Shown: one piece after another, positions 3 through 41,538 of the stretch
Layout of the letters: each line of letters begins with the position of its first letter
Numbering within the stretch: the stretch's first letter is position 1
Assembly: GCF_963853765.1 (NCBI RefSeq)
Contig: NC_088855.1
Span: forward strand, 11,284,001 to 11,348,000
DNA: 64,000 nucleotides
Source of the DNA: Magallana gigas
Taxonomy: Eukaryota
Direction: 5' to 3'
Notes under the pieces: generated by a model
Databases searched by the model: none
What the model saw: only the letters and a program-made list of their open reading frames with translations
Told to the model about the DNA's origin: nothing
Translations under genes and position numbers: made by a program

Positions 3-896
3 TACGCGTCTTGTTTTTTTCATTCTAAAATATATTCCTTTGCAACCAAGCTAAAACCGTATCTCTTCCAAGTGTCATTGGATTTTCTTCTACTAGCAAC
101 TTTGTTCATTGTGAGGACACTTCCATCCTGTGGTATTTTGAGACAGAACACATACTTGTATTTGCAAAATATTTCGATCGAAAACAAATCCACGACACAT
201 ATCATGGATCAGAGAAAGAGTGCAGTCATCTCCATGGCTATTGGACTTGTCCTTCACATTCCTTTTTTAGTAATGGCATTGGTTATTCGTTTTGTTTTTA
301 TTGACAATATATACAACATAAGAGAGATATGGCAAAACCTCGTTATCTTTCAAAAAGTACTAATGTCAACAGCGATTTTTGTTGCATTTTCACACATTAG
401 AGATATAAAGACAGACTCGGGCGTTTGGAGACTAGGAGCCAGTGACTATGTACTTCTATCTTGCAGTGTTGGTAAAGTAGTCATGCAAGCTTTTGATATA
501 CTTACAGCTACGTATTGTGCAGAAATTCATATTCTTCTAAGTAAAGGCCTGATATCTCTCGTGTTTTACTTCTATCAGACATTGTACATACTTATATCTA
601 AAAGATCTTCACCGTCGTTTCGGAACCAATCAAATGTAGTTGTGTTTGTCCATGTCTTGCTGTTGACACTGAGTGTTACCCAGTGGATTACTACAACATT
701 TATACTCAGCGTGCAAGGGAATTTTGTTTTAAATGAAGGAATTGGCTGTTTGTTTGAAAGCCCTATTGTTTGGAAGGTGTTGCAATATATTAGTGTACCA
801 TTTACGATGTACTACGACTTCCAATCTGCAATGCATAATTACAGTATTCTACCTACTTTAGATTCGCTAATCATGGGTAAAAAAATAGCTTTTTAA
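3..896 (+). CDS. Otopetrin-like protein, copy A (5'-partial; derived YYD type)
   Basis: The frame is open from base 3 (YASCFFHSKIYSFATKLKPYLFQVSLDFLLLATLF...), upstream of the listed ORF at 72. It aligns by eye to TM6-TM12 of the other copies: TM6 PYLFQVSLDF and TM12 WKVLQYISVPFTMYYDFQSA, versus the otopetrin consensus YPFNIEY and PFxIFYRxH. Confidence 0.85.
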   Translation, partial: YASCFFHSKIYSFATKLKPYLFQVSLDFLLLATLFIVRTLPSCGILRQNTYLYLQNISIENKSTTHIMDQRKSAVISMAIGLVLHIPFLVMALVIRFVFIDNIYNIREIWQNLVIFQKVLMSTAIFVAFSHIRDIKTDSGVWRLGASDYVLLSCSVGKVVMQAFDILTATYCAEIHILLSKGLISLVFYFYQTLYILISKRSSPSFRNQSNVVVFVHVLLLTLSVTQWITTTFILSVQGNFVLNEGIGCLFESPIVWKVLQYISVPFTMYYDFQSAMHNYSILPTLDSLIMGKKIAF

Positions 897-1582
897 ATAC
901 TTGCATGAACAGACAATTTGATTCATAGTAAAATAATCCTATATATATTGCACTGAAATAATCCCCGCATGAATTGTATTGTTATATCTGTATGTTTGAT
1001 ATTCGGACGTTGTTTTAATTAATAAATTTCAATTTCCAAAAAAATTGATTAATATTTGCTGAAAAGAATATGTGTCTAAGATTTTTTATATTGTTTTATA
1101 AGGACATAATCCTATAAAACTCATTAATTCTCATAACAATTGTTTCGCTATAATTTTATTAAATGTTTTGAACCCAAACGATACAATTACGCAAGAAAAA
1201 TTTTGTATTTTACTATCCATAAGATGAACTAATCGATCTTTTCCAGTTTTTTTAGGGGAAGAAATCATCGATTGATGTTTGAAAATGTATTATATGAATA
1301 TTGTAATAACATATGTATGATTTGTATATTCAGTTATCGTGACTCCATAAGATACCAATGAGCAAACCACTGTTCTATACCCCCCCCCCCCCCTGCGAAG
1401 ATTCATTCAATGATTTAATCTAAAAAAATAAAATATTTGACCATAAATCTGGAAGTTCCTTTTACACATATGAATTTATAAATTTCATACACTTATGGTA
1501 AAGAAAAAATAAAACAATTAAGTTCCGTCGAACAAGGAAATGTGTTTTTGAACTTTAATTTTTGTTTAAAATATATATCTTG

Positions 1583-3094
1583 GACGAAAGAGACAGCAAA
1601 GAGAATGCCGTCCTTCATGGACTCAACGGTAAAATATTGAAAACCATTCTCTGTTTTCCTTTTGTGATGGGACAAAAAAGGTTCCTGGCTGGGATTCCAT
1701 GGAAACAAACTCCAACCGCGCTATTGTGTTAATTGTATGCCTCGTTTCAATCTTTGACGCTGTTATTGTTGTGTTTCGTATCCAACACATGCACGACGAA
1801 TATGAAGATCTAAGCAGCGAGTAATGATACGTTACTTCATATCTGATGACTATAGTAACAATTTATCTCTTCGTTTTACTTATAATATCATATTTTAATC
1901 TCTGGGGTCAACCGCTTTCTTAACGTGTTTTCGAAACTGATTATATCCCCTCCTCTAATTAAGTTTCAACTGGGATTTCTTTGGCCATTTGGCCTAGTCT
2001 TGATTGTAAAGATTTCGTTAACAATTGCAAAACAATAACTAAAAATACAATGTACCAATGCCGAAAATCTTTACACTGAAATCGCAAGTATATATAGGAT
2101 CATCATACATGATGATTGCATTTGTATTATCCCAAACGACTTTGATTTTCTTAACACGGTAGTCAAGATTTTGTAGACATTTGTAGATTTTGTTTTCAGT
2201 TGGACCAATCATACTATCTAATGGAAGCATTTGGTTTCACCTTTTACTTGCGGTCATCGCCGAAAATCTTACTCAACGGAATGGAATCTAAAGTTGAATA
2301 ACAGTGATAAGCAAACAAAAAATTCATGATTTTATGCCACTTTATCTCCTATCCATTTTGATATTTTTTCTAGCTTTTTCCTTCTTGTTTTATCTTAACG
2401 ATTTGGAAAAGGTTAATAACACTCAAAGACGATTTGCCAAGTTCAAACAAATTGAAAACAAATAGTACACGGAAAGTGAAGATTGTTTCTGCTGCCCTTG
2501 GATATGTTATTAATATTCCATTCTATTTAATTTATCTATGCCTATGATTTGTATATTCTGATACAGAAGTGATGCATGATACATGGACTACAATCAAACG
2601 TGTTAAAAAGTCATTGATGTTGTTGCTGATTATTATTGCTTTTTCATGCCTCAAACAGAAAGAAACAATTTTACGTTCGAGTGGCTTTGAATTCAGTGAT
2701 TGATCTTTTTCTTCTTTGTTGTTTTGCCGGAAAAGTTGCTCGACATGTACCGAGAACTATCACTGCTTGGTACTGCTACCGTGGTGCAAATCCACTGTTA
2801 TTTAAGGGTTTGATATCTGTTGTATTTATTTCTACAACACGATGTACGTAATTATACCAATGTGTCCATGTTTATCCATGTTTTACTCTTTACACTGAGC
2901 ATGGCACAACGGATCGTTGCAGGCCTGATTCTCAGCATGCAGGGTGACTACATGTATGTTGTTAGCGAGGGACAGGGTTGTTTATTTCAGAACCCACATA
3001 GGGGACCATAATACAATGCTCCATCACACCATTTTCTTCATACTATAATTTTCAATGTGCAGTGCATTTTTATAGTCAGATTGTAAAATCATAG
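1583..3094 (+). pseudogene. Otopetrin-like pseudogene, copy B
   Basis: Fragments across frames match paralog segments: GKILKTILCFPF, KFQLGFLWPFGLVLIVKI, AFVLSQTTLIF, ILSNGSIWF, KVKIVSAALGYVINIPFYL, LFLLCCFAGKVA, MFIHVLLFTLSMAQR, EGQGCLF, PFSSYYNFQCAVHFY*. There are several in-frame stops (e.g. TGA 2545-2547) and frameshifts. The 5' boundary is approximate. Confidence 0.85.
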
Positions 3095-5950: not shown

Positions 5951-6991
5951 TTAACACTTATTATAAATAAAGCATTGCAAATGCAAAGTACGTGTATGTG
6001 TAGTTGTGATTAATGCAACGTCATAAAACTAATGAATCTTTTAAATCTTCATATATTCAAAAACGGAGTCATATGCTTAACAAATTAAAAATCTTTTTTT
6101 AAGGATAAAATATTTTTTAAAATGAACAAATTCAATATGGCTTAATTAACTTTGTCCTTGTTGAATTTTGCTCTAAAATAAGGAAACATTATTTTCGTGT
6201 ACGGAAACAGTCAATTTCTAATCGTTTGTTTTTAAAGTAAATCACTAACACGTCCTTCTATAGATAAGTTATCAAGGAAGTAATACTTTGATATTTCCCT
6301 GTCTGAAAGCGGCTTATGGCGTGTTGAATTCCCTCGAACTTTACAAAAAAAGGATACGTAGTCGCCATTGAGTGGAATATGTAGTCAGTGTTTCTAGACA
6401 AAGGTTTGTATATAGACAAACTTTTTATTAGACCGACATTATAAAACATTTCAAATAAATAATTATGATGTAAATTATAAATATTATATTTGTAAATACT
6501 GTTCATTGTAAATTTTACGCATTGTACACAGTGTATTAAGTTGAATTGACCTGACTTTTTTTTTAGGTTTATATTTAACCGAAATGGAAAGATTTGCGTT
6601 TAATTTTCAGAATCTAAAAAGATTTTACAAGGATTATTAAACAATTAAGCTATAGCGTTTCATCTTTAACAATAAGTAATTAGAAAATGTTTTCCCCGAA
6701 AACTTAGTTAAGTAGTTGGATTGAAGCGCATGTTAAGTTTAGCGAATAAAATATATTTAAGAAAAATACGAGAACAAAATGTTGATATGAGCATAAGAAT
6801 AAGAAACATATGATATTTGAAAAAATTATAAAATTGATCATATTTTTTTTTCAATATTTAAATGTTATGAAGAAGTTTTATGGTAATATTAATGATAAAA
6901 TTTTCCATTATTTCTATATCTGGAATGCATGTACATGTAAATATTTGTACCGGTATGTATGTTGATTTATAAATGTATCTTTGTAGGAAAC

Positions 6992-8542
6992 ATGAAAACT
7001 TTTTCATGGCTTCATGGCATAGTGAAAACGATATTGTTACCGTTTTCCTCTGGAACTTCTCCTACAGCTCAACCAGATGAAAGTAACATGAACGAGGAAA
7101 TATCGCCTACACTAACATTTGCGCACTTGGTTTCTTGTTTCTGTATAGTCCTTGGAATCTACTCCGGAAAACAAACGACTGATGATACTGCGCGTGCAAT
7201 TGTCTGGGGGTTAGTAATGGGACTCGTCAGCTGTGGAGTTATAGCCTTGGTCGTGCTCATATTCTCCAATTCAGTCATCATACCTCAGTCTGAAAATACA
7301 GAGACAAAAGATTATTCCATGAACTTGAGGATTATTTTCCTTTGGTTATTTGGCCTTGCAGTCATATTGCAAAGCGCTGTAAATTTTGCTATAGATCTGG
7401 AGTGTGTCCAAAAATTTCCTGAAGAAAACATTATTTACATTGGATTTCTTAGTTCATCTGTACTTGTCTTATTCATCATATTGCAAATGGGAGCCATAAC
7501 ATACTTCAGAAATCATTATTTTAACAAATCTGTACAGATAAATTTTGCGGTCGTGTTTATCTCTTTGGCTAATTTTGGATTGTGGTTCAACTCTGTTGTT
7601 AGTAACTTAAACGATACGTATACTACGAATCCAAACATATCCCATATGATTATTTTCAAAAATGCGACCAGCTGTTACTTTGATTCGAAAATCCAACACG
7701 CTCTTAATAGCAAGCTAACTCCTTTTTTACTACCTACCCGTATGGAATTTTTCATTTTAGCATCCAGTTTCTTTATATCATTTTGGCATTCCTCATCAAA
7801 GCAACAAAACTGTCATTCACGTGTTATCAGCGAAGAATTAATACACGGAGTTTGTGATGAAACTACCGCCCTTTTGCCCAGGAGCACTGAAAATCGCGCT
7901 AGCCACGTTTTCGCCATCATGATTTCAATATTTCTCAGCCTGCCTACCTTTTTGACATGGCTGCTACTGTCCTTCGTTTATAAAGACGACAGTGACCATC
8001 TAAACACTGCCTACGAAATATGTCATTGCTTTAATTCCCTTGCCATAATCGTCATAGTTTACATTACTTTTGACAACCTGTCCAGAAGATACATTATTAG
8101 AGAGAACCATCGCCCTCTTACGACTAGTGAAACTATTCTGGTGTTTAGTTCGGCTGGGGTGGTGGCCTACAGCACATATGGACTGCTCTTTGCTCTCCAG
8201 TCCCAAGTAAGTGAACACATGGCAGCTTTATTCCGAAACATATTTTGGATTTTGGAAACATTTTTACAAACATCTCTTTTGATACAGTGTCAGCGGTACG
8301 TACTGTCAGAGAAAAGATCCAAACTCCTCTCCTCGTTTGCCCTGGTTATAACTATTACAAATTTAATCAATTGGTTTCTGTACTCTGTTTATCAAAATGG
8401 GCCGACAGAAGGAAGAGAGCTAATCGTCGGAAACAAACGTAACTGGGCGTACGTTAAAACAATACTGGTACCGTTGTTAATCTTTTACAGGTTTACCTCT
8501 GCTATGAATTCATATTCCCTCTACAATCAAATTAAACCATGA
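6992..8542 (+). CDS. Otopetrin-like proton channel, copy C (canonical-motif copy)
   Basis: Uninterrupted ORF with about 12 hydrophobic segments. Otopetrin motifs: IILQMGAI (TM4 Gln), LANFGLW (TM5 Asn), LLPTRMEFFILAS (TM6 Glu), ILETFLQT (TM10 Glu), TNLINW, PLLIFYRFTSA (TM12 FYR). The ORF opens at 6959, but a polypyrimidine-AG acceptor at 6985-6986 favours ATG 6992. Confidence 0.9.
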   Translation: MKTFSWLHGIVKTILLPFSSGTSPTAQPDESNMNEEISPTLTFAHLVSCFCIVLGIYSGKQTTDDTARAIVWGLVMGLVSCGVIALVVLIFSNSVIIPQSENTETKDYSMNLRIIFLWLFGLAVILQSAVNFAIDLECVQKFPEENIIYIGFLSSSVLVLFIILQMGAITYFRNHYFNKSVQINFAVVFISLANFGLWFNSVVSNLNDTYTTNPNISHMIIFKNATSCYFDSKIQHALNSKLTPFLLPTRMEFFILASSFFISFWHSSSKQQNCHSRVISEELIHGVCDETTALLPRSTENRASHVFAIMISIFLSLPTFLTWLLLSFVYKDDSDHLNTAYEICHCFNSLAIIVIVYITFDNLSRRYIIRENHRPLTTSETILVFSSAGVVAYSTYGLLFALQSQVSEHMAALFRNIFWILETFLQTSLLIQCQRYVLSEKRSKLLSSFALVITITNLINWFLYSVYQNGPTEGRELIVGNKRNWAYVKTILVPLLIFYRFTSAMNSYSLYNQIKP

Positions 8543-9479
8543 TAGTATCATTTCAAGCAAATGGTGGATATAATTATGAGCAAAGTTTACATAAAATGGT
8601 TTATTGAAAAAACAAATTCAAATTAAAATGAAATATGTCTGTACCTATGTTGACTTCTGGTTCATATTGTGCATGTATATGAAAATGTATCAATGAGTTG
8701 TTCATTATTCGCGATGCATGTATATGAATGTATGAAAATATAGTAAGTAAACTTTGTAATACAAAGATAAATTAGTTAATGAGGGTATTTAGCAAAAGTA
8801 CACAGCATGGATGGCATTCAATGTAGTTCTTAAAACTGAAGTAATTTATCAATAATGATTGTACTCATACAGAATATCAGAATAACTGTTGTATTAGTAA
8901 AAAAGGAGTTGAAGTATTGTAACTTGATTATTCATATAGTTCTACAATCATGATGACAGAAAATAGTCTAAACTGAAGTATCAAAAAATAAAAAAAGTTA
9001 ATATGTTTTAGAAAGACTTTAATTGTAGTTGCGCATAGCTAGTTCAAAAACATGCAGTCTTGTTATTATCTTTAGTTATACTAGTATTTTTGACAGAAAA
9101 ATAATGAGTAAAATAAGCAGATATTGTTGTTGTGGATATACCTGTAGTTGTTTTGAATGTTTAGTTGTATTGATTTAAGTTATCGTTGTGCACTTAATTG
9201 TTGTCCTACTAAAGGTAAAATGAAAATACGAAATAGAAGTCGTAACAGTAGTTTAAGTTGTTTTTCTACTTCAAGAAGTTGTTATTATTTTTAGAGTTTT
9301 AGAGATATCGCCGTAGATGTCGTTACTAAGTGTACGCTTTGTAGCTTTAATTCTAAAATTGACTGCAGGAAAATTATAAATACGAGCTGTTGTAATTGTC
9401 AATATTAGATTCAACAGTTGTTGTTCAAGTAATGGTGTTTGTGAAAGATATAAATAGCAGCAGCTAAAAAAGATGTTCA

Positions 9480-10087
9480 AGAAATACATTGTAGTTGTAA
9501 AAGCAGCAGTAAAAAAAGAGTTTTGTGGTAGTAGAAAAAGTAGAAGTAGCTGTAGCAGTAAAAGTAGCAGTAGTATTATTATACATACTATTCAAATTAA
9601 TAACTATAGTTGAAGTATATCTAGAACTAATATTATCAAACGAATCGTTGTATAAGATAGATAAATAATTATTTTGTCTTAGACGTTGAAGTAGTAGAAG
9701 TAGAAGTAGTAGTAGTAGTTGCAGTGGTAAAATTAGTGGTAGTATTAGTAGCAGTAAATCTAGAAATAGTAGTGCAGTAAACGTAGTAGTCGTAGTTGTA
9801 GCAGTAACAGTAGTTGTTGTAGTAGTAGTAGATGTAGTTTCAGTAGTAATAGTAGAAGTAGTATTAATAGCAGTAGAAGTAGTTGTAGTAGTAGTAGTAG
9901 TAGCAGTAGTACTAGTACTAGTAGTAGAAATAGTAGTAGTTGTAGTAGTAGTAATAGTAGTAGTAGTATTAGCAGTAGTAGTAGTTGTTGTAGTAGTAGA
10001 TGTTTTTTGCAGTGGAAATGGTAATAGAGTAGTAGTAGTAGTAGCAGTAGCAGTAGAATTAGTAGTAATAGAGTTGTAGTAGTAGTA

Positions 10088-10139
<52 letters not shown>

Positions 10140-10390
10140 AAGTAGATGTAGTTGCAGTAGTAATAGTAGTTGATTTATCATTATTAATAAAAGTAGAAGT
10201 AGTAGTAGAAAAAGTAATATCAGTAGTAGTTGTAGTAGTGATAGTAGTATTATAATAGTATTTGTAGTAGTAATAGTAGTAGAAACAGTAGAATTAGTAA
10301 TTGAAAAAAGTTGTTGGAGTCCTAATAGTTGAAGTGGTAGCTAAAGTCATAGTAAAGAAGTAGTACATGTAGTAGTAATAGTAATTTTTT
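9480..10390. repeat. Degenerate (AGT)n / (TAG)n simple-sequence tract
   Basis: Long imperfect agtagtagt run, purest at about 9880-10140. Confidence 0.9.
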
Positions 10391-11009
10391 TATATACTTT
10401 GGGTACATGTTATAAGTAAAGTAATATTGCTGATATAGCACTTATTTTTTAACATGAAATTTAGTAATAGTGGTGTTCATAGAGAATAGTATCATAATGT
10501 TATGTTGGTCTTTAGAAACAATGCAACAGTTTGCAATGTTTTAAGGTTTTAATGTTGATTTTATGCTTTTGTTTGTATGTACATTTTGAATTCGAATATA
10601 ATATAATGTACGTTAAGTTACATTAAAAGAAATATTCTGAATTTTAGCTTTGTTTTATGAAGTCCAAATCGATCGCTTTCTTTATTTATTTTTGGTGTGC
10701 ATTATGCCTCTGAACACACAATTAATACAATAGTTGATAATCAAAGGGCTGAAAAGATGCCATTTTTGATCTTCCAATTGTTTCCTCTATTAAACCATTT
10801 TTTAAAGAAGAGATTAACACCTCTTTCTAGTTTTACTAACCGACAGGATATAAAACAAACTTAAAAAATAAACCATGAAAAATAAAGACATAAAATCACA
10901 ATGGTAAAAAGAAACAAATAGTTCCTAGGACGAAATCTTTACTTTTGAAATTAGAAAAAATACATGTTACAGGTTATGAATTTAAATGTCTCGTTATCAA
11001 TGTATTCAA

Positions 11010-11200: not shown

Positions 11201-12007
11201 TGTTCTACAATCGCCGAAAATAAAAAAAGTTCAGTTTTATGTTTTTTATGTTTTTCATATGGGTATAACGGTTGTGATCATTTCAGGAAAAAACAAGAAA
11301 AAAATGTTCATGTTACAATGTAACGTTAAACTACTCACTAAAACGTTCCCTACATGTATGTGTACTTATCGTGACCGTTATACTAGATACACAAAGAGTC
11401 AGAGAAGCATGTTCTGCTTCTTCTTACAAAACTTACATTTACCAAGAAAAAGAATACCAGGTAAAGTCTCAAAAGACTGGATATATGGTTATAAGATTAA
11501 GAATAAATCAGAAAAAAAAAACATACAGGGATTTGAAATGATTTTTTAAAATATATGCGCGAAAATGCTCCATGCAATTAGTCGTGGTAATGTTTCCCCT
11601 TCTTCTTAATAATATTTATTTGAAGTGTTAACAACAGCTGTAATAACTTATTAAATTTAAAATTGAGTTTTTATGATCATTCCTTCCTTCATTTAGATAA
11701 ATTCTTATCCTGTGTCATTTTTTTTTTAAATTGAATTCATGCAAAGAACGATCGACATAATTTTTTTACCATATTCACAAGGTTAGTGATCGTTGAGGTA
11801 AAATTCATATATCCAATTTTCTAAAAATAAAGTTGGATATAATTTTCTAATTTGATTTATAACTGATATTGATATATTAAACTAACCATTTTGAAACAAT
11901 ATTTAAAATTGAGATAAATGATGGAAACAAAATCATCCTCATGCATGCAAAACTTAGCAAACATAATTCGATATGTAAAATCGACTTCTCTTGTTGTCTT
12001 TAGCAAT

Positions 12008-13552
12008 ATGACGATTCGAATAAAGAGAAGACTTTCATTCATCATCAACTTTTTGTTGCTGAAACCCCTTAGTTTTGGAAATCCTACTGTTGAAGGAAAT
12101 TCGGACGGAAGTACGTCATCGGCTGTCTCCTTTGCCTGTGGTTTCGCGATTTTACTAATAACAATTGTATATTTTAGTGTGCAAGTTACGATGGAGAATT
12201 TTTCAAGCAACCCATTGTGGGGACTTATGTTATTCTTAATCGCCATAGGAATAATTGTCTCAGCTCTTCTGGTACAAACCGCATGCTGTCAGTCGAATGG
12301 CGTCATACAACGACAACAGTTAAAAGACAAATGTGTCGAACTAGAGATAAAGTTTCTTTGGTTTTCCGGGCTAGGGGTCATTCTACAAACTGGTCTATTT
12401 TTGGTGATTGGTTTCGAATGCATTAAATATTCATCAGACTCTTGGGATTTATGCAAGATCATCTCCTTATTCCTAAAGATTGTGTTTTTTTTAATCCAAA
12501 TGAGTTTTATTACATTTTCAAGGAACACGCGTTTGCTTGGTGGTATATTTATTAATTACTTGATTGGGGTGCTACTTCTGGCAAACACCAGTATATGGGT
12601 CAATTTTTTCACATTTAGTGTAGTTTATATCTATGATTTTTTTAACATTACAATTTCACTCACAAATTCATCTGCTTTGAATGACTGTTATTATCACTCT
12701 AAAACGCAAAAGATATCCAGACATCTAAGTTCTTTTAGTCTCAGCGTAAGCATGCTGTTTCTTTTGTTATCATCTATGTTTCTTATTCGTCTGTGGCCAT
12801 CCATTCAAAACGCATCAAAAATGAGCAACCGTATGACTTTGAATAAATGCACAGTATCGAATACCAGTAGTGAACAACCCAACGCCAACAATCGAGCTTC
12901 GAAGAGTCGTAGGATAGTCCGAATTATTTCATTTTGGGGGAGTTTCTTAATCAATTTTCCGTTTTTCACGATGGCTTTATTGATGAGGTATGTGTACACT
13001 GATGATATCAATACTGTTAAAGTGTTTTGGGACTTATTTGTTATTTTTTGTGTAACTGTCATGGTGCTGATCATTGTTTTTGGAATCCAAAACCTTAATT
13101 TAAATTGTATAGAAAAGAGACCTTTTTCAACATGGGAATTCATTTTCCTGGTATCTATGGCTAGCAAAGTTGTCATGAGCATCCTTGGATGTACTTCAAT
13201 CTTTATTTGTCTTGTTGATAAACCAGTCACAATCTTTACAAAAAACCTATTGGATTTAATCTTGACATTGTATCACAGTGTTTACATCATAGTTGCTCGA
13301 CGCACGCCTCAGTTCGAGTTTGACAAATCGATCGCAAATCTTTCAATCCATGTAATTCTATTTTGTTCCTGTCTTGGGCGTTGGTTTCTGCAAACGTTTA
13401 TTCTTAGTTCTGAGGGAATGCACATATTTGAAGAAGGTAAACAGTGTTTGTTTACCGATCGAAGATCTTGGCACACTACACAATTTGTCTTGATACCTCT
13501 GAATGCTTTTTATGATTTCCAATCATTTGTATTTTATTACGGTAAAATATGA
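12008..13552 (+). CDS. Otopetrin-like protein, copy D (derived FYD type)
   Basis: Intact single-exon ORF (open from 11918). An acceptor ctttag at 12002-12003 precedes ATG 12008. Motifs: CVELEIKFLW, LIQMSFI, LANTSIW, SMLFLLLSS, YHSVYII, CLGRWF, PLNAFYDFQSF. Confidence 0.88.
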   Translation: MTIRIKRRLSFIINFLLLKPLSFGNPTVEGNSDGSTSSAVSFACGFAILLITIVYFSVQVTMENFSSNPLWGLMLFLIAIGIIVSALLVQTACCQSNGVIQRQQLKDKCVELEIKFLWFSGLGVILQTGLFLVIGFECIKYSSDSWDLCKIISLFLKIVFFLIQMSFITFSRNTRLLGGIFINYLIGVLLLANTSIWVNFFTFSVVYIYDFFNITISLTNSSALNDCYYHSKTQKISRHLSSFSLSVSMLFLLLSSMFLIRLWPSIQNASKMSNRMTLNKCTVSNTSSEQPNANNRASKSRRIVRIISFWGSFLINFPFFTMALLMRYVYTDDINTVKVFWDLFVIFCVTVMVLIIVFGIQNLNLNCIEKRPFSTWEFIFLVSMASKVVMSILGCTSIFICLVDKPVTIFTKNLLDLILTLYHSVYIIVARRTPQFEFDKSIANLSIHVILFCSCLGRWFLQTFILSSEGMHIFEEGKQCLFTDRRSWHTTQFVLIPLNAFYDFQSFVFYYGKI

Positions 13553-18429: not shown

Positions 18430-19956
18430 ATGGGAGAGTTCTTGAAGAAAACTCTTCTGCTGGTACTACGTACACCATTGGTTGCTGGCAATCCAACAAG
18501 CGAGGCGGCTTGTAGACGAGACACAGACGGGAGCACTTCGGTGACAGTGCTGGTAGCAGTCACCTTTCCTATGACTATAGTTTTGTTTTTCATGCTAACA
18601 TGGTACAAGGGAGATAGTGAAACATTGTACAACCTACATTGGGCTAGCAGAGCACCATTCATGTCGATTGCTGTTATTAGTCTGACTGGGTTTTTTGTAG
18701 TTGTATTGAAAAATAAAAAATATTGGATGAAAGACAACTTAGAATGGAAGCAAAATCGATCTGCTGTCATCCAGTTGGGATTTTTATGGATATTCGGAAT
18801 AGCAATGATCTTCCAAAGTTGTTTAAAAATCATCGCCACGGGAGAATGCATTACAAGTGTTCATAGTGTCGCTTTTGGTTACACTGGACGACTTTTTTCA
18901 TTAACTGCAAAAACTGCATACTTACTATTCCAACTAGTGTTCCTGTCGTGCAATTTTGGAAAGCACTTCATAAAAAACACAATATATATTAACTTCACAT
19001 TTGGTGGTTTGTTGTTTGCTAATGGAGTTATTTGGCTGGAATATGTGTCTGAAAGGTCGGTGCACTTGTTTATGTATGAGAACAGTACGAAGCTTAACCA
19101 TACATGGTTGTGCTACTCCCATTCCACGGGCCACCAAATTAGCCAGACCATGTATGCTTACATGGTTCCTGTAACAGCGGAATACATTTTAGTAGCCACA
19201 TTGTTTATAGTTAATATGTTTCCAAAGAAAAAGAATACTGAACATTCTTCAGAAAACAGTCATTACTATAGTGAGGAGAATGAATCTCGACCAAATATGA
19301 ACATGAAAACTATAAAAAATATGGGATACTTGATTAGTATTTTTGTCCATGTTCCTTTGTTCGTTTTAGCAATATTGGTTCGTTTTGTATATGTGCATAA
19401 TACAGATAGTATCCTGGCTTTGTGGGAGACCTTAGCAACAATACAAAAGCTATTCATGCTTATTTTAAATTTCGTTGGGTTTTCTTTCCTTGAACCCCGA
19501 AAATATAGTTCTTGGATGTTTTCTTCTAATGATTATATACTCTTGTGTTGTATGGTTGCAAAGCTAGTATGTATACTTCCTGTCATTCTTTCCATTTTGA
19601 ACTGTAATATATTAAATCAAAGAACTTTACTTTTGTCCAATAATATGTTATATCTTCTCCAAGTATTTTATTTTACTATTTATATCCTTATGTCTAGCCG
19701 CCCGATGTGCGTGCATAACAGGCATAGATCTCGCGTTTCAACATTTATCCAGTCTGCGTTTTTTGTAATTACGACCGGTAGGTGGGGAGTAGAATCATTT
19801 TTTCTCTCAGAAAAAGGAACTGATATTATAACAGATAAGACAATTTGTTTATTTAATGATAAACGAGATTGGACAATGATCCAATACGTGATAACACCAT
19901 TAAGTGCATCTTACGATTTTTTCTCTGCCATGATTTTGTACAGGTCGCTACATTAA
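18430..19956 (+). CDS. Otopetrin-like protein, copy E (TM6 Glu retained, TM12 SYD)
   Basis: Intact 508-aa single-exon ORF with an acceptor cag at 18418-18420 just upstream. Motifs: IQLGFLWIFG, LFQLVFL, FANGVIW, VPVTAEYILVA, TTGRWG, PLSASYDFFSA. Confidence 0.88.
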   Translation: MGEFLKKTLLLVLRTPLVAGNPTSEAACRRDTDGSTSVTVLVAVTFPMTIVLFFMLTWYKGDSETLYNLHWASRAPFMSIAVISLTGFFVVVLKNKKYWMKDNLEWKQNRSAVIQLGFLWIFGIAMIFQSCLKIIATGECITSVHSVAFGYTGRLFSLTAKTAYLLFQLVFLSCNFGKHFIKNTIYINFTFGGLLFANGVIWLEYVSERSVHLFMYENSTKLNHTWLCYSHSTGHQISQTMYAYMVPVTAEYILVATLFIVNMFPKKKNTEHSSENSHYYSEENESRPNMNMKTIKNMGYLISIFVHVPLFVLAILVRFVYVHNTDSILALWETLATIQKLFMLILNFVGFSFLEPRKYSSWMFSSNDYILLCCMVAKLVCILPVILSILNCNILNQRTLLLSNNMLYLLQVFYFTIYILMSSRPMCVHNRHRSRVSTFIQSAFFVITTGRWGVESFFLSEKGTDIITDKTICLFNDKRDWTMIQYVITPLSASYDFFSAMILYRSLH

Positions 19957-25992: not shown

Positions 25993-26030
25993 AAAAAGGT
26001 ATTTGGTGTGAATAAAATAATCATTAGAGC

Positions 26031-26065
<35 letters not shown>

Positions 26066-26090
26066 GAGAGGAGGAGGAGAGAGAGAGAGA
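26031..26090. repeat. (GA)n microsatellite
   Basis: Visible GA dinucleotide run with a few interruptions. Confidence 0.95.
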
Positions 26091-27650: not shown

Positions 27651-29201
27651 ATGAAAGATGAAATAAAGAGGATAATCTCATACATCATTAACTTTGTGTT
27701 GCTGAGACCTCTCAGTTTCGGAAATCCCACTAATGACGGAATTTCGGACGGAAGTACGTCATCGACTGTCTCCTTCGCCTGTGGTTTCGCTATCTTACTT
27801 ATCACCATTGTTTATTTCACTGTTCAATTTACAATGGAAAATTTTACAAGTAACTCGTTATGGGGATTGTTAGTCTTCATATTGGTGTCAGGGACAGTTG
27901 CTACAGGTCTTCTTCTGACCTTAATCGTATTTTGTCACTCATATGACGTCATTCGTCGACAACAGTTGAAAGACCGATGTGTCGAACTAGAGATCAAATT
28001 TTTGTGGTTTTCTGGTTTAGGGGTTCTTTTTCGTGCTGTTATTACTTTGGCTATTCAGTGTGAGTGCGTAGTTGTGTCTGAAGGCTTTCGTGAGATTTCA
28101 GATATAACATTGTCGTGTATGAAGATAATTTTCATGTTAATCCAAATGTTTTTCATCACGTACTTACGAAACTCGCGTCTACTTGGTGGCTTGTTCATTA
28201 ACTATTTAATCGGGGGTTTGTTTTTAGCAAATACCAGTACATGGGCGAATTATGTTACTTTCAGAATAAGTGATATCTATATTCATACTAACGGTACATC
28301 TCTCCTACCACTTTCAAATCAATCGATATATAATGAATGTTTCAATAATTCCAAGATGCACAAAGTCTCCCGTATATTAAGCTCTTTTTTCCTCAATGTC
28401 AGCATGCTGTTTCTTTTGTTATCATCAATGTTCCTCATAAGACTTTGGCCCTTAGTTCGAAACTGGCAACATATGAGAAATAGTTGTATTGTAAACGCAG
28501 GTATTAATAGTGTCAGTGGGCAGCCTGATACCTCTGGCCGAATTATTCAAAATCGCAGGACAGTTCGAATTATTTCCTTCTTTGTCGGATTTCTAATAAA
28601 TAGTCCGTTTTTTACAATGGCTATTTTGATGAAGACTGTATACAGTAATGATATAAAATCCATTAAAGTTCACTGGGATTTGTTTGTTATTCTTGTCTTA
28701 GCTGTAATGATAGTTATCGTTCTTGTTGGGATTCAAAACCTTAATTTGAATTGTCTAGAAAAGACCTCTTTTTCCACATGGGACTTGATTCTGATGATGT
28801 GTATGACGGGAAATGTGATCATGAACACACTCGGAATCACTTCAATCTTCCTGTGTAATGTAGATAGATCAGTCACAATTTTTACCAAAAACTTGTTAAA
28901 TTTATTCACGACTTATTATCACACTGTGTATATAATAGTTGCTAAACGTACACCCCACTCCGAGTTTTGTAAATCGATTTCAAATCTTTCCATTCATGTA
29001 ATTCTATTTTGTTCCTGTCTGGGGCGTTGGTTTTTGGACATGTTCGTTCTCAATTCTCATGGTAAATACATTTTAAAGGAAGGTGAAGGCTGTTTATTTC
29101 CTGATCATAGATGTTGGCTTACGGCGCAATATTTTTTAATACCTTTAAATGCATTTTACGATTTTCAATCATTTGTATTTTATTACGGTAAAATATGGTA
29201 A
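27651..29201 (+). CDS. Otopetrin-like protein, copy F (derived FYD type)
   Basis: Intact single-exon ORF. The acceptor ttttcag at 27647-27648 is followed by ct and ATG 27651. It has the same motif set as D, G and H and ends FYDFQSFVFYYGKIW. Confidence 0.88.
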   Translation: MKDEIKRIISYIINFVLLRPLSFGNPTNDGISDGSTSSTVSFACGFAILLITIVYFTVQFTMENFTSNSLWGLLVFILVSGTVATGLLLTLIVFCHSYDVIRRQQLKDRCVELEIKFLWFSGLGVLFRAVITLAIQCECVVVSEGFREISDITLSCMKIIFMLIQMFFITYLRNSRLLGGLFINYLIGGLFLANTSTWANYVTFRISDIYIHTNGTSLLPLSNQSIYNECFNNSKMHKVSRILSSFFLNVSMLFLLLSSMFLIRLWPLVRNWQHMRNSCIVNAGINSVSGQPDTSGRIIQNRRTVRIISFFVGFLINSPFFTMAILMKTVYSNDIKSIKVHWDLFVILVLAVMIVIVLVGIQNLNLNCLEKTSFSTWDLILMMCMTGNVIMNTLGITSIFLCNVDRSVTIFTKNLLNLFTTYYHTVYIIVAKRTPHSEFCKSISNLSIHVILFCSCLGRWFLDMFVLNSHGKYILKEGEGCLFPDHRCWLTAQYFLIPLNAFYDFQSFVFYYGKIW

Positions 29202-32805: not shown

Positions 32806-34359
32806 ATGACAGAAAAAATAAGGAGAAGAATATCATACGTCATCAACTTTGTGTTGCTTGGGCCACTAAGATTTGGAAATCTTACTGATGCTGAAACGTC
32901 GGACGGAAGTACGTCATCAACCGTTTCATTTGCCTGTGGTTTCGCAATTTTACTTATCACCATTATATATTTATCTTCTCCTGTTGCTGATGACTTTTTA
33001 AACACCGACTCTATTTGGGAACTTTTGGTGTCATTGATGGTCACAGGAACCCTTGCAACGGTTGTTCTTCTGGTTGGCATCGTATTTGGTCGTTCATATG
33101 ACGTCATTCGACGACAGTTAAAAGACAAGTGTGTCGAACTAGAGATAAAATTTGTGTGGTTTTCTGGGATAGGAGTACTTTTCCGTACTGGGATAAATTT
33201 GGCGATTGAATTTGAGTGCGTAAACATTTCTTCAGGCTTTCGCGAGATTTCGAAAATAGTATCTTCGTTCTTGAAGATAATGTTCATGTTAGTCCAGATG
33301 ATATTCATTACGTATTTAAGGAATAAGCGTTTAATTGGAGGGATATTCATCAACTACTTAATTGGAGGACTGTTTCTGGTAAACACTTGTATATGGGTCA
33401 ATTTTATAACAGTAAAAATAATTTATATTTATGCCTTTCAAAACGCTTCTTCTTCCGTGCTAGCTAGGAATTTATCAACATGGGATAATTGCTACTGGCA
33501 TTCCGAGACGCACAAAATATCCCAAAGGCTTAGTTCTTTTCTTCTCACTGTTAGCACCTTGTTCTTTTTGTTATCGACTATGTTTCTCGTTCGTTTGTGG
33601 CCCTCCATTCAAAGCACAACACAAATGAGAAACCGATGTGTTGTAAATGAAGACGTGTCGATAAACAGCGATGGAAGACCTAACACCGCAGACCAACTTA
33701 TTAAGTATCGGAGGAAAGTCCGTATCGTTTCCTTTCTTGTTGGATTCCTAATGAATAGTCCGTTTTTTACGATGGCTATCTTAATGAGGTGGGTGTACTT
33801 TAACGATATCGTTCCCGTAAAGGTGTTCTGGGACGTGTTTGTTATTCTTTGCCTGTCTATATTAATACTCATCATCCTTGCTGGAATACAAAACTTACAT
33901 TTGAGTTGTCTTGAAAAAATACCATTTTCCACGTGGGACGTGATTCTGATGTTGTGCATGGCGGGTAATGTAATTTTAAACATTCTTGGAATCACTTCAA
34001 TCTTCGTTTGTCACGTTGATCGGTCAGTCACAATTTTCATCAAGAACGTTTTGGGCCTAATCTTGACATATTATCACACTGTGTACATCATTGTTGCTCA
34101 ACGTACCCCCCTGTCCGTGTTTAGAGAATCGACATTAAATCTCTCCATCCATGTTATTCTGTTCTGTTCATTTCTGGGACGCTGGACACTGCAAACCTTC
34201 CTCCTAACTTCTCAAGGAATGTACATTCTGAAGGAGGGCGAAAAATGCTTGTTTCCTGATGAAGAATCCTGGCGTACGATGCAGTATTTTTTGATACCTA
34301 TGAATGCATTTTATGATTTCCAATCATTTGTATTTTATTACGGTAAAATATGGTTTTAA
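32806..34359 (+). CDS. Otopetrin-like protein, copy G (derived FYD type)
   Basis: Intact 517-aa single-exon ORF. The acceptor ttttag at 32802-32803 precedes ATG 32806. It ends PMNAFYDFQSFVFYYGKIWF. Confidence 0.88.
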   Translation: MTEKIRRRISYVINFVLLGPLRFGNLTDAETSDGSTSSTVSFACGFAILLITIIYLSSPVADDFLNTDSIWELLVSLMVTGTLATVVLLVGIVFGRSYDVIRRQLKDKCVELEIKFVWFSGIGVLFRTGINLAIEFECVNISSGFREISKIVSSFLKIMFMLVQMIFITYLRNKRLIGGIFINYLIGGLFLVNTCIWVNFITVKIIYIYAFQNASSSVLARNLSTWDNCYWHSETHKISQRLSSFLLTVSTLFFLLSTMFLVRLWPSIQSTTQMRNRCVVNEDVSINSDGRPNTADQLIKYRRKVRIVSFLVGFLMNSPFFTMAILMRWVYFNDIVPVKVFWDVFVILCLSILILIILAGIQNLHLSCLEKIPFSTWDVILMLCMAGNVILNILGITSIFVCHVDRSVTIFIKNVLGLILTYYHTVYIIVAQRTPLSVFRESTLNLSIHVILFCSFLGRWTLQTFLLTSQGMYILKEGEKCLFPDEESWRTMQYFLIPMNAFYDFQSFVFYYGKIWF

Positions 34360-37619: not shown

Positions 37620-38421
37620 AGCTATACACGCTATAATTTGCGTCAATTTTGAATAAAGGGGAAAATGTATGTGTTTGATTACTAATAAAAGTTACCTTTA
37701 TTCTGTTAATTATAATGCTCAATTCGATCACGTAACAAATAAATCAAATATTAAACAATAAAAAATATTTATTTTCCTGCCAGGAAAGTAATGCCTCCTC
37801 GTGAATATCAATCTATCACGTGATATCGACAGCTAAATTTAGCTTATCATACCAAAACTGGTGAAGGGTCAACATCTTCATAATTGTGATAGTTTCACAA
37901 AGGAAAGGATATTTTCAGTAAAGCATAAATTTGTCCGATATACGAGTACAAACAAAAGAAAAAAATACAAGCCTGTGAGTAGATATGAATACTTCCTTTA
38001 AAAAAATGACGTAGACCTGTGTTTTTCCCCTATGTGCTATTTATAGATCCTATAAGTGTTAATGCAGAAGTAAGGGTATCGTGAATGGCAAGCGTATTTT
38101 ACTCATTATACATGTATGTATTTCAAATAAACAACTGTTAAGCATATTAAAAATCAAGTTGGATATTTAATTAGGCAAACAATAACGACCACCTAGTTCT
38201 CCGCGGACATGCGCAATGTGGTCGGTTTGCTCTTCCTTCATCAATATTCATGAAAAGGTATATTTTCCTGGCAGAAAAATAAACAATTAAAAATCTATAT
38301 CTTTGTAACGAGATGGAATTCATCCTTGTAATTTACAGATTAAGGATAACTTTTATAAGTAGACAAGCACATGCGTTTTCACTGTCATTCAAAATTGACG
38401 CAAATTATAGCGTGTATAGAT
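37620..38421. mobile_element. Non-autonomous Kolobok-like DNA transposon with long imperfect TIRs
   Basis: AGCTATACACGCTATAATTTGCGTCAATTTTGAA.. and ..TTCAAAATTGACGCAAATTATAGCGTGTATAGAT, with imperfect inverted similarity extending about 190 bp. TTAA flanks at 37616-37619 and 38422-38425. Confidence 0.75.
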
Positions 38422-39987
38422 TTAAAGCTAAGCTTTTAATGATTGAGTCCATTTAGTGCCGAGTATAGGACTACCTTAAAGGGCAATGTACGTGTAAGTG
38501 CATTGCCTCAGCGGAAGCAATGATTTAAGTTACACTGGAAAGTCCGAATATGTTAGGGGAAAACAGTTAATTTTACAAAATAATTAATTTGAAAGCAATT
38601 TTTTATATGCACTTTATTGTTTTCTTTTTTTTAAGATGAATACATCTGTGTCTCTGTCACTTTATATTCCTATACAGAGTCTTAATTATTTGATCTATTC
38701 TATGTCGGAAAGAACGATAATGATCTTGACCATACCTAAATAAAATACAGTACACAGTAAATATACTCCCCTTTTTGAATTCGCTCTCGTTGTCCGTGGG
38801 CAAAGCGAAAACACGGGGGGGGGGGGGGTCAACACTGTATACACTAAAATGATTCAATCAAATGTTAATGATACATTCATTTGTTAATATTGTCTGTTTG
38901 TTTGTTTGAAAATTTCCTTACTCTTTCAATAAACAAAAGTAGAATATTCTTTCCTTACAGCTGTGATTAAATGTACATTCTTCCTCATTTAATCTAAACA
39001 AAACCAATAAATTATAATACTGCGCATTTCAGACAACAGTTTTAAATACATGTACATGTAGTGTTGAAAGAAAAAGTATGAATATTTAAAGAAGAGATAT
39101 AAAAAAAAATGATACCAATTAAACTAGCTCTATAGTGAGCTATTTTAAAAAATCCCATTTTCGACCGACATATACGGTACGGTGTATTATTAATTACAAA
39201 ACAAAAAGGAAAGTCTGTCCCGATTTTCAGAATATATACAATAAGTGAGGCTCCACTGTATAATGTTGAAAAGTGGTGGGGGTATCCATGCCCTAAATGA
39301 TCTTTTGTAAAGTCGAGTTTTGAAACGAATACATTGTGTTACTTAATCGATAACTTAAGACACTTATTTATTTTCAAGAAAAATATTTGTAAATCATGTC
39401 CACCCGAGCATTTCTAACCCATGCACTTGCAGTTTTTGAAAAGGGACGTATATACAAAATGTCCTTAATATCAAATAAACAATATTATTACTTTCGTATG
39501 CAACAATAAATTTCAACTTTATGTCATTTTCTTGTTAAAATTTTCCTGCATTTTGGTATTGTAGTTTTTTAAAATATATATATGTAGTTAATGGTTCGTA
39601 CAATGCTTTCCTGGTGAGTTCGGCGTACTTGTGTCTTGGATTTAATTGCTTACATAAACATCGGTATAAGAAGATATGGGTAAGATTCTTTCATAAAATT
39701 AGTATTACTGAAATTATTATTTTTTTTTTTGGCTTTTCATGCATGTCAAAAGAGAATGGCAAAGATCTATAGTAAAAATGATGTTTTAAGACGGCAAGCC
39801 TTAAGGGTTTATTGTGAAATTTTCCGATTTTAAATTTGTTTTAATTTTAAGCTTTTAATAAAAACGGTTTCAATTATAGAACTTACAGAGGGCAGGTGTT
39901 TGTGTTTAGATGATTACGATACACTGTAATAAAAAAACCACATGCTAATTATGTATTTTGACTGGATTTTTTTTTAATTTTATTGAT

Positions 39988-41538
39988 ATAAAAGACGAAG
40001 TAAAGAGGATACTTTCTTACATCATCAACTTTTTATTGCTGAGACCACTCAGTTTTGGTAACCCTGCTGAAGAAGGAAATTCAGACGGAAGTATGTCATT
40101 GACAGTCTCCATCGCCTGTGGTTTTGCAACTATACTTATCATGATTGTATATTCGTTAGTTGCAGTGGAGAACTCTACCGTCTCTTCTTTACGAGAAACT
40201 CTAGCACCAGCAGTGGTTGCGGGAACAGTTGCTTTAGCCTTCGTTTTGATCCTCTTCGTCGTCTGTCGGTCAAATAATGCCTTAAGACGTCGGCAACAAT
40301 TAAAAAACAAATGCGTCGAACTAGAGATCAAGTTTCTGTGGTTTGTTGGGTTAGGGGTGCTTTTGTTTTCCGGAAAAAATTTGGCCATTAAATTTGAGTG
40401 CGTGAAAAAAAGTCCAGTACTTAACGAGATTACAAGCATAATGTCATCACTTCTGAAGATAGTGTTCATGTTGATCCAATTGAGTCTGATTACGTATTTA
40501 AGAAATTCTCAACTTCTTGGTGGATTGTTAGTCAATTACTTAACTGGAGGATTGCTTTTAGCAAACACTAGTGTATGGATCTTTTTCATAGCGAGGGAAA
40601 TAAGTTATATTTATACTTTTCGGAATGATACATCACCAGAATCCAATTCATCAACATGGGAAGATTGCTTCTGGCATTCAGAAACGCAAAAAACATTCCA
40701 AAAATTTAATTCGTTTTTTCTCAGTGTTAGCATGCTGTTCTTTTTGTTATCATCAATGTTTCTTGTTCGTCTGTGGCCCTCAATACAAACTACATCACAA
40801 ATAAGAAACCGCTACACAGTCAATGAAGAAGACGAATTGTCAACTGCAAGTATTCCACAACAAGAGAACACAAGTTGTCGAGGTAACCAAATCCGTAGGA
40901 TAGTTCGAATCGTATCCTTTTCTGTCGGGCTTCTGATGGGATGTCCGTTTTTTACGATGGCTCTTCTAATGAGATACGTGCCTGATGATGTCGGTACCGT
41001 TAAAGTTTACTGGAATATGTTGAGTATTTTTTGCCTCATTGTTATGATACTCATCATCCTTGCTGGAATCCAAAACTTGAATTTAGGTTGTATCGAAAGA
41101 ATCCCTTTTGCCACATGGGACGTAGTTTTCATGTTTGGAATGGCGGGGTATGTTGTTATATTCATAATTGGAGGTGCTTCGGTCTTCGTTTGTCAAGTGG
41201 AGGGATCAAGTACAATTTTCACCAAAAACGCCTTAGGGTTAATCGTGACATATTATCACTCTGTCTATATTATAGTTGCTCGACGCACGGCACAGTCCGA
41301 GTTTAGAGAATCGACAACAAACCTCTTCATTCACATTATTCTGTTTTGTTTATTTCTTGGACGTTGGACTCTGCAAACCTTCCTCCTTAGTTTTAATGGA
41401 ATATACATACTGAAGGAAGGCGAAGATTGTTTGTTTCGCTCCCAAGAATATTGGCGCATGACGCAGTATTTCCTCATACCTTTGAATGCGTTTTACGATT
41501 TCCAATCATTTGTATTTTATTATGGTAAAATATGGTAA
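39988..41538 (+). CDS. Otopetrin-like protein, copy H (derived FYD type; ancestral start codon lost, first ATG at 40093)
   Basis: The frame is open from 39958 with no stops. The position homologous to the copy F ATG reads ATA (39988-39990), and the first in-frame ATG is at 40093. It ends PLNAFYDFQSFVFYYGKIW. Confidence 0.82.
   Translation: MKDEVKRILSYIINFLLLRPLSFGNPAEEGNSDGSMSLTVSIACGFATILIMIVYSLVAVENSTVSSLRETLAPAVVAGTVALAFVLILFVVCRSNNALRRRQQLKNKCVELEIKFLWFVGLGVLLFSGKNLAIKFECVKKSPVLNEITSIMSSLLKIVFMLIQLSLITYLRNSQLLGGLLVNYLTGGLLLANTSVWIFFIAREISYIYTFRNDTSPESNSSTWEDCFWHSETQKTFQKFNSFFLSVSMLFFLLSSMFLVRLWPSIQTTSQIRNRYTVNEEDELSTASIPQQENTSCRGNQIRRIVRIVSFSVGLLMGCPFFTMALLMRYVPDDVGTVKVYWNMLSIFCLIVMILIILAGIQNLNLGCIERIPFATWDVVFMFGMAGYVVIFIIGGASVFVCQVEGSSTIFTKNALGLIVTYYHSVYIIVARRTAQSEFRESTTNLFIHIILFCLFLGRWTLQTFLLSFNGIYILKEGEDCLFRSQEYWRMTQYFLIPLNAFYDFQSFVFYYGKIW

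Follow-up and report, generated by a model that had tools for sequence, protein, structure and literature searches.

The window, the whole stretch of 64,000 nucleotides that was analysed, contains a portion of a tandem array of single-exon otopetrin-like genes that is specific to oysters. Apart from copy C, the array members form one clade that predates the Ostrea/Crassostrea/Saccostrea split. Within that oyster clade the Arg of the FYR motif was changed to Asp, and the site has been held acidic by selection since. A second, independent Arg-to-Asp change took place in Pinctada (pearl oysters). The oyster copies carry the Asp and have lost most other residues of the proposed proton path, yet they are kept by selection. 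The function of the Asp clade is therefore probably not ordinary proton conduction.

The tandem array and its otopetrin homology

The Asp-type tandem cluster reaches about 32 kb upstream of the window and holds nine intact copies, with ORFs of 508-544 aa, and two broken ones. The features inside the window are as follows.

1..896, + strand: copy A, 3' part; YYDFQ, Asp GAC 816-818; A-type subclade in the tree
1892..3076 (approx.), + strand: pseudogene B, A-type, with stops and frame changes; SYYNFQ 3038-3055, Asn AAT 3047-3049
6959..8542, + strand: copy C, 527 aa; FYR kept, AGG 8489-8491, context IFYRFT
11918..13552, + strand: copy D; FYDFQ, Asp GAT 13514-13516
18430..19956, + strand: copy E, 508 aa; SYDFF, Asp GAT 19915-19917; TM6 Pro and Glu kept
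20833-20992 and 21660-21792, no strand: two assembly gaps, intergenic between E (end 19956) and F (start 27651)
27651..29201, + strand: copy F, 516 aa from the first ATG; FYDFQ, Asp GAT 29160-29162; the copy modelled with AlphaFold
32806..34359, + strand: copy G, 517 aa; FYDFQ, Asp GAT 34315-34317
39951..41538, + strand: copy H; FYDFQ, Asp GAT 41497-41499

The gene start of copy A lies upstream of the window (G000:C3:11283310), and its full 528-aa ORF was read at L038:511-2094. The true start of copy D is probably an internal Met near 12008, which would be in line with the starts of the other copies. In copy H the ATG at 39951 is out of frame by 1 nt against the ORF that is open from 39958, because the length of a T-run differs from that in contig L039. 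The second broken copy of the array is located upstream of the window at C3:11275061-11276568. No otopetrin-family remnants were detectable near the two assembly gaps, which are intergenic. Therefore, none of the analysed reading frames is affected by them.

Every codon cited in the preliminary description was found: copy C has Arg, the six copies A, D, E, F, G and H have Asp, and pseudogene B, whose YYNFQ reads as claimed, has Asn. The alignment check placed the Asp opposite the FYR Arg (R572 of zebrafish Otop1), and the proposed homology of the two residues was thereby confirmed. In BLASTP, copy C matched copy F at 6e-28 and copy E at 8e-19 with full-length coverage and with Asp opposite Arg. 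A 117-sequence family profile, in which the Asp copies are in register, matched every one of the OTOP structures at 1e-27 to 1e-40, and FYR, N528 and E429/Q433 fell in the same columns as in those structures. Only this profile linked the oyster proteins to solved structures; searches of these with copy C (phmmer) or with a 7-sequence profile gave no otopetrin match. The homology of the Asp copies to otopetrins thus appears clear by transitivity, from C against F and then from the family profile against the OTOP structures.

Standard domain annotation misses the FYD branch. With the Pfam Otopetrin model (PF03189, cut-off 27.8 bits), copy C (49.4 bits) was the only window copy above the cut-off; E reached 25.4 bits, and A, D, F, G and H gave no match. 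FYR-keeping intronless paralogues were detected by the same model. The AlphaFold model of copy F was obtained with pLDDT 89 and pTM 0.88. Its 12 best Foldseek matches in the PDB were all otopetrins with a probability of 1.00 and TM-scores of 0.5-0.75 at the top, and no non-otopetrin PDB match fell below E = 0.08. The Asp copies are thus predicted to keep the twelve-TM double-barrel otopetrin fold. The same twelve-helix, two-barrel fold is that of the vertebrate proteins OTOP1/2/3 (6NF4, zebrafish Otop1; 6NF6, chicken Otop3; 6O84, Xenopus OTOP3; 8UG6, mouse OTOP2), and the identity of the Asp clade to the solved OTOP structures is about 12%.

Origin and conservation of the acidic site

Asp was read in 10 of the 10 readable copies of this cluster and in none of the 29 other intronless otopetrin-like ORFs of the same genome, 27 of which keep Arg. 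The TM12 motif is (F/Y/S)-Y-D in the nine intact genome copies and in their orthologues (Glu in one; P0022, the orthologue of copy E, reads FYEFF). Hence these proteins do not carry the FYR box, a motif of TM12 and the C-terminal tail described as "present in all ODP proteins" (Hughes 2008). A library of 1.84 billion proteins was also searched, with 455 hits. Among its column-readable representatives, Arg is present in 92 and an acidic residue (Asp or Glu) in 20; 19 of these 20 belong to two groups, the exception being one short unnamed fragment.

In the tree, the oyster Asp copies form a single clade (SH-aLRT 99), with XP_022312590 of C. virginica, XP_056015761 of O. edulis and LOC133172016 of S. 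echinata as named members. The sister group (98) consists of L015, an FFRFH gene at C3:47.86 Mb, and its O. edulis orthologue, followed by the C clade (97). Among the FYR-keeping paralogues, L015 and copy C are the nearest relatives. Copy C is not the parent form of the Asp copies; their closest FYR gene lies at a distance of 36.5 Mb. The Pinctada FYDFH pair takes a position separate from the oyster Asp clade. When the oyster and Pinctada Asp proteins were forced to share one origin, the AU test rejected the constraint (p = 1.5e-5); the grouping had been defined after the tree was seen.

The site is acidic (Asp or Glu) in all 15 tree members of the clade, within which the summed branch lengths amount to roughly 9 substitutions per average site. 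The dN/dS values are 0.23-0.43 between Asp paralogues and about 0.52 (0.5-0.7) for copy E against its orthologue, which is fairly relaxed. FYR paralogues gave 0.15-0.63. The view that the Asp has become fixed in a deep clade that is under purifying selection is borne out by the 15 acidic sites and by dN/dS well below 1. A dN/dS near 1, the sign of decay, was not found; the values of 0.23-0.52 lie in the range of the FYR-keeping paralogues and therefore do not indicate decay.

Expression was compared from read layouts in a single run search in which D was the only Asp copy examined. Copy C was found in RNA-library contigs at a depth of 20-27 with a 3' tail to about 9654, and copy D was found in scraps only, at a depth like that of intergenic DNA. 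Two Logan contigs that carry H-like and E-like genes run colinear with the genomic sequence and have no splice or poly-A; therefore, RNA and DNA are indistinguishable in them.

Pore residues of the Asp clade

The proton path of otopetrins is debated between the N barrel, the C barrel and the inter-barrel interface. The published constriction triads are Q174/N204/Y268 in the N barrel and Q433/N528/Y571 in the C barrel. The triad Q174-N204-Y571 given in the preliminary description mixes the two. The FYR Tyr and Arg are members of a C-pore hydrogen-bond network. The E429-R572 salt bridge exists, the mouse Otop1 mutation R586E greatly lowers the current, and the double swap E433R/R586E partially rescues it (Saotome et al. 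2019). TM6 Glu and TM12 His form a proton-transfer pair, and changing this His to Ala or Gln kills function in XtOTOP3; E325 and H567 of CeOTOP8 underlie the Glu/His relay model.

In the N barrel, Gln and Asn are retained in nearly all Asp copies. No full-length window copy lacks the TM4 Gln, the TM5 Asn or the TM12 Tyr, as had been noted, and one upstream array copy has Glu at the TM4 Gln position. The N-barrel Tyr (Y268) is Phe in most Asp copies, and Phe is also common in FYR paralogues including copy C. The C-barrel triad, to which the FYR Tyr belongs, is not intact. Its Tyr (Y571) is retained in the Asp clade, whereas its Asn (N528) is replaced by C, F, S, T, Y or G in all window Asp copies. 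Its Gln (Q433) has become His in the D/F/G/H type and Phe in copy E and is retained in the A type. TM6 Glu is Leu or Ile in the D/F/G/H type, Asp in the A type and Ala in the O. edulis member P0024; only E and P0022, the closest orthologue of E, keep it. The TM6 Pro of Pro-x-x-x-Glu is lost throughout the clade except in the E type. The TM12 His (H574) is changed to Gln or Phe in all oyster Asp copies. Gln (A, D, F, G and H) or Phe (E) had been reported two residues after the Asp, and this was found, but copy C has Thr rather than His at that position. Taken together, the changes of the C-barrel Asn, TM6 Glu and TM12 His agree with the proposal that pore-region residues were broadly rewired.

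Not all of these losses set the clade apart. Many FYR-keeping oyster paralogues are likewise without the TM12 His, and relay loss is therefore not peculiar to the Asp clade. On these residues, the whole oyster expansion may work differently from vertebrate OTOPs. The TM10 Glu (LETFLQ in copy C) is absent from all Asp copies, as described. However, its loss was rejected as a hallmark of the clade, since among FYR-keeping paralogues the position reads L, G, I, C, H, T, V, Q, A, Y or E. It carries no weight because the position is unconserved both in the oyster family and in OTOP3.

The clade has also gained residues that are conserved clade-wide: a basic one where TM7 ends on the outer side, Tyr, Gln-Tyr and Leu positions in TM10-12, and a clade-specific pair of Cys, in the TM9-10 and TM11-12 loops. 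In the D/F/G/H and E subclades, an Arg in the motif G-R-W has appeared one turn above the position of the lost TM11 Asn. As a universal partner of the Asp this Arg was rejected, because it is missing in the A-type subclade and present in some FYR paralogues. The basic residue at the TM7 end probably lies too far towards the outer surface to be the partner. A metal site from His, Cys and Asp in D and F was dropped, as the Cys is unconserved in G, H and the orthologues.

Compared with vertebrate OTOPs, the Asp clade keeps the N-barrel Gln and Asn, the TM11 Trp and the TM12 Pro and Tyr. It differs in the Asp at the FYR Arg, in the lost C-barrel Asn and the frequent His or Phe for Gln, in the loss of most TM6 Pro/Glu and TM12 His residues, and in its single coding exon. 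CeOTOP8 of C. elegans (8UG4), Drosophila OtopL and the nematode OTPLs are likewise lineage-specific paralogues with the same fold, and some invertebrate otopetrin-like paralogues serve as acid sensors according to PMC9909269 and PMC8211824. Unlike the oyster Asp clade, the described invertebrate otopetrin-likes retain FYR and the Glu/His relay. The FYR-keeping oyster paralogues (copy C, L015 and others) share architecture, size, fold family and dN/dS range with the Asp copies, but retain the Arg (27/29), the TM11 Asn and the TM10 Gln. Copy C itself retains TM10 E-x-x-x-Q, TM11 Asn and TM6 Glu, with Thr for the TM12 His. The engineered mouse R586E reverses the charge at the very Arg that was changed in the oyster clade. 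In contrast to the mouse double swap, the oyster clade lacks a basic residue where E433 stands and gains the TM11 Arg (two subclades) and the TM7-end basic residue. The Pinctada Asp proteins gained a Lys beside the E433 position and are thus nearer to the engineered swap than the oyster clade. They also retain Glu, His and the full triad alongside the Asp. Asp alone need not abolish channel function.

Possible functions of the Asp clade

The reading that we favour, and hold to be fairly probable, is that the Asp clade carries a rewired C-barrel site on the otopetrin fold. Proton conduction by the published Glu-to-His relay or by the C-barrel polar network would have been given up, and the Asp would invert the charge within the C-barrel vestibule. 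Its probable partner in the D/F/G/H and E subclades is the new TM11 Arg of G-R-W; in copy F this would join Asp 504 to Arg 459. The ion preference or the gating would be altered as a result, or the protein would serve as a sensor. A more specific proposal, tentative and somewhat doubtful, is that the FYD clade left proton conduction and that its acidic C barrel (Asp with the TM11 Arg, or with His, residue 424 in copy F) is a putative site for metal, Ca2+, ammonium or a ligand, a change begun independently in pearl oysters as a Lys/Asp swap. If true, this would be the first non-proton function of the otopetrin fold and a natural dissection of the current-carrying barrel.

It is rather unlikely, in our judgement, that the FYD proteins are still proton channels, conducting through the intact N barrel or another route while the Asp is tolerated or tuning in a minor-path barrel. 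The N-barrel Gln and Asn, present in nearly all copies, are consistent with such channels, and so are the Pinctada FYDFH proteins, in which Asp stands beside the whole relay and triad; the three candidate pathways are still open in published work. On the other hand, the greatly reduced current of mouse R586E argues against proton conduction, as does XtOTOP3, which is dead with Gln or Ala for His, because the oyster FYD copies all have Gln or Phe there and most are without TM6 Glu. The FYD proteins might instead be non-conducting partners that dimerise with FYR subunits and modulate them, or chemoreceptor-like sensors on the scaffold. OTOPs are presented as obligate dimers in 10.1101/542308, the lineage-specific, tandem and intronless family with moderate dN/dS is typical of sensory families, and the extracellular Cys pair and conserved loop residues of the clade would suit such a role. 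This explanation is nevertheless improbable, since strongly conserved new residues are found in the membrane helices too, besides the loops.

Decaying duplicates, with the Asp as a neutral leftover, are by far the least credible explanation and were already disfavoured. Two array copies are indeed broken (B and C3:11275061-11276568), the start codon of copy H is out of frame in this assembly, most copies are no longer recognised by Pfam, and the RNA-library depth of copy D is no higher than intergenic. Against decay stand the nine intact ORFs, dN/dS values well below 1 and equal to those of the FYR paralogues, orthologues in three other oyster genera, the acidic residue kept in all 15 members despite heavy divergence, and the confident fold of the copy F model.

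The Asp clade offers a natural test case: the N-barrel polar residues are kept, while the FYR charge is reversed and the C-barrel triad and Glu/His relay are dismantled. Copy C, L015 and the pearl-oyster FYD proteins complete a comparison series for which elements conduction and selectivity need. A literature search for mollusc otopetrin expansions or the FYD variant found no paper. The otopetrin-like expansion is also relevant to how a calcifying animal of estuaries senses pH, ions or chemicals. Oysters have about 40 intronless otopetrin-like genes, and the FYR-keeping paralogues of this genome also occur in clusters on C8, C3, C5 and C10.

TM12 codons and their homology to the FYR arginine

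The window (C3:11284001–11348000) carries six complete single-exon ORFs of 508–544 aa (copies C, D, E, F, G and H) in head-to-tail order on its + strand, together with copy A, which is the 3' part of a seventh ORF, and the broken copy B. Upstream of the window, the array goes on with three further intact copies and one broken copy. Saccostrea, Crassostrea virginica, Ostrea edulis and Pinctada supply the nearest named proteins. The TM12 codons were re-read from the window sequence, and all of those cited in the preliminary description were correct.

TM12 codons of the array and assembly gaps (window positions)
816, + strand: copy A, Asp (GAC)
3047: broken copy B, AAT, in SYYNFQ
8489, + strand: copy C, Arg (AGG), in IFYRFT
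13514, + strand: copy D, Asp (GAT)
19915, + strand: copy E, Asp (GAT)
29160, + strand: copy F, Asp (GAT)
34315, + strand: copy G, Asp (GAT)
41497, + strand: copy H, Asp (GAT)
Upstream of the window: four copies, (I/M)YYDLQ
20833–20992 and 21660–21792: assembly gaps between E and F, with no family remnant there and no reading frame affected

The proposed homology of Asp to the FYR Arg was upheld by BLASTP, the family alignment and a structure model. Asp stands opposite Arg in the full-length BLASTP alignments of C with F (6e-28) and of C with E (8e-19). A family alignment of 117 sequences, with the Asp copies in register, matches all solved otopetrins (1e-27 to 1e-40), and its Asp/Arg column is zebrafish R572. 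In the same alignments, N528 falls in the TM11 Asn column and Q433 in the TM10 Gln column, and E429 comes four residues before Q433. The AlphaFold model of copy F is of high confidence (pLDDT 89, pTM 0.88) and has only otopetrins as its best 12 PDB matches; nothing else was significant. With the Pfam Otopetrin model, copy C is detected at 49 bits, as are the FYR relatives, and the Asp copies are missed, E reaching 25.4 bits, under the cut-off. Therefore, orthologues of the Asp clade are filed as uncharacterised.

Several minor features of the reading frames were also seen. The ORF of copy D has a 30-residue N-terminal extension (11918–12008) absent from the other copies, whose starts match an internal Met of D near 12008 in the alignment. 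Copy H has a single upstream ATG (39951), which is shifted by one base from the reading frame of the ORF (39951–39990) because the T run differs in length from that of L039, a contig of another individual; in L039 the ATG is in frame, and the protein (P0016) has 528 aa. The difference reflects either an assembly error in the homopolymer or allelic variation. Downstream of the array lies a reverse-transcriptase fragment (Pfam RVT_1, 1.6e-18; 47978–48544, – strand), and additional N runs are at 49361–49497 and 51013–51148.

Origins and constraint of the Asp clade

A maximum-likelihood tree of 74 full-length proteins placed the oyster Asp proteins in a single clade (SH-aLRT 99) with three subclades. 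The A type comprises A, the upstream copies and the library proteins P0021 and P0025. The E type comprises E, P0022 (which has Glu) and O. edulis XP_056015761, and the D/F/G/H type comprises those copies, Saccostrea LOC133172016 and C. virginica XP_022312590. As its sister, the whole clade has L015, an FFRFH gene at C3:47.86 Mb, grouped with the O. edulis orthologue of that gene (support 98), and the copy C clade branches next (support 97). Copy C belongs to the array, but, with L015 nearer in the tree, it is not the parent of the Asp copies. P0008 and P0028 of Pinctada imbricata, both FYDFH, fall with another FYR clade. Constraining all acidic proteins to one origin costs 80 log-likelihood units (AU p = 1.5e-5). 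Replacement of Arg by Asp occurred at least twice. Any change from an Arg codon to Asp takes at least two base changes.

The dN/dS values (NG86) were 0.43 for the youngest pair, up1/up2 of the upstream copies, 0.25 for A/up4, 0.23–0.32 among D, F, G and H, 0.52 for E against its orthologue of another species and 0.24 for two H alleles. FYR-keeping paralogue pairs of the same genome gave 0.15–0.63. Because the values are in this range, the Asp clade is constrained as its FYR relatives are and is not decaying. Decay with dN/dS near 1 was the alternative to the selection claimed previously, and the values of 0.23–0.52 agree with that claim. About nine substitutions per average site have accumulated in the clade (summed branch lengths), 14 members have Asp at the acidic site and one has Glu, and the Asp position is among only 23 invariant columns of a 14-sequence alignment. 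The Asp observation is real and highly non-random and reflects a selected state.

Residue changes around the acidic site

The C vestibule contains an E429–R572 salt bridge; mouse E433R and R586E each cut the current strongly, and the double swap gives a partial rescue (Saotome et al.). The C-pore hydrogen-bond network includes the FYR Tyr and Arg (Chen et al.). A 2024 study of CeOTOP8 and mOTOP2 proposed proton transfer from TM6 Glu to TM12 His, and His-to-Ala or His-to-Gln was dead. The published triads are Q174/N204/Y268 (N barrel) and Q433/N528/Y571 (C barrel) (Saotome et al.), not Q174-N204-Y571 as in the preliminary description. In the Asp clade, Gln and Asn of the N barrel are retained, and so is the TM12 Tyr. 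The TM11 Asn is lost (replaced by Cys, Phe, Ser, Thr, Tyr or Gly), and the TM10 Gln is His in the D/F/G/H type and Phe in the E type, being kept by the A type only. The TM6 Pro and Glu are lost except in the E type. TM12 His is replaced by Gln or Phe, as described before. Loss of the TM10 Glu carries no weight as a signal, since the E429 position varies throughout the paralogues, and OTOP3 and the canonical oyster OTOPs have Gln there.

The clade also has gains (copy F numbering from the ATG at 27651). Residue 328, at the outer end of TM7, is basic (Arg/Lys) in 18 of 19 members; among FYR-type sequences, just 1% have the clade's usual Arg there. A Cys pair, Cys402 of the TM9-10 loop and Cys481 of the TM11-12 loop (about 28854 and 29091), occupies the same columns in all Asp-clade copies and may form a new extracellular disulfide, given its pseudo-symmetry to Cys139/Cys230, the pair found family-wide in the N half. 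Other gains are Tyr427, Leu467 and Gln493-Tyr494. In the D/F/G/H and E subclades, an Arg lies three residues past the lost TM11 Asn (G-R-W). Helix geometry would put it roughly one turn higher than the triad, in the zone where the canonical Arg extends toward E429, which makes an Asp–Arg pair plausible. The Pinctada proteins retain a complete C triad along with TM6 Glu and TM12 His, and have Lys beside the E429 position where their FYR sisters have Thr. This Lys/Asp combination resembles the engineered mouse charge swap and looks like a natural one.

The Asp clade is best read as a neofunctionalised, oyster-specific otopetrin-like subfamily, in which the C barrel and the inter-barrel relay would be rewired around an acidic residue. 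Its members may conduct other ions, may still pass protons via the N barrel, or may have a role as sensors or partners. The FYR box was reported in all family members (Hughes et al. 2008), and our literature search found no paper on a mollusc otopetrin expansion or an FYD variant. The clade and its relatives are a natural test set for otopetrin mechanism.

Expression and wider distribution

RNA-library contigs cover copy C and its 3' tail at a depth of 20–27, and a 1% sample of a poly-A run gave reads in the 3' region of C only. Copy D appears only as 157–268-nt fragments at a depth like that of intergenic pieces, and the contigs that contain H-like and E-like genes match the genome colinearly and so are uninformative; these libraries therefore do not demonstrate transcription of the Asp copies. 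The contigs run from copy C to about 9654 and again over 10173–10641, ending in an A run; the repeat at 9655–10172 was left out of the read layout. The stretch 8543–10641 may be a long 3' UTR belonging to C.

In the M. gigas genome, four canonical OTOP genes with introns (C2:14.33 Mb, C2:50.37 Mb, C5:18.90 Mb and C5:55.28 Mb) are accompanied by about 40 otopetrin-like ORFs without introns, which form tandem clusters on five chromosomes (C3, C8, C5, C4 and C10). Outside the Asp cluster, Arg is kept in 27 of 29 intronless ORFs, the exceptions being the loci L013 (Gln) and L004 (Leu). TM12 His is also missing from many FYR-keeping intronless copies. An exhaustive profile search of 1.84 billion representative proteins gave 455 hits. 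Among the column-readable sequences of the best 150 of these and earlier hits, the residue was Arg in 92, Asp or Glu in 20, His in 8 and others in 11. The eight His representatives fall in a clade with a named mussel member, FYHFE/K (P0101, Mytilus californianus XP_052068526; P0110; six more), a further natural departure from FYR in which the Arg is His and the TM12 His is Glu or Lys. FYLFH occurs in L004 (C8:31419325–31420302, – strand) and P0124, both with Arg for the TM11 triad Asn; in this lineage, the pore Arg appears to have shifted from TM12 to TM11.
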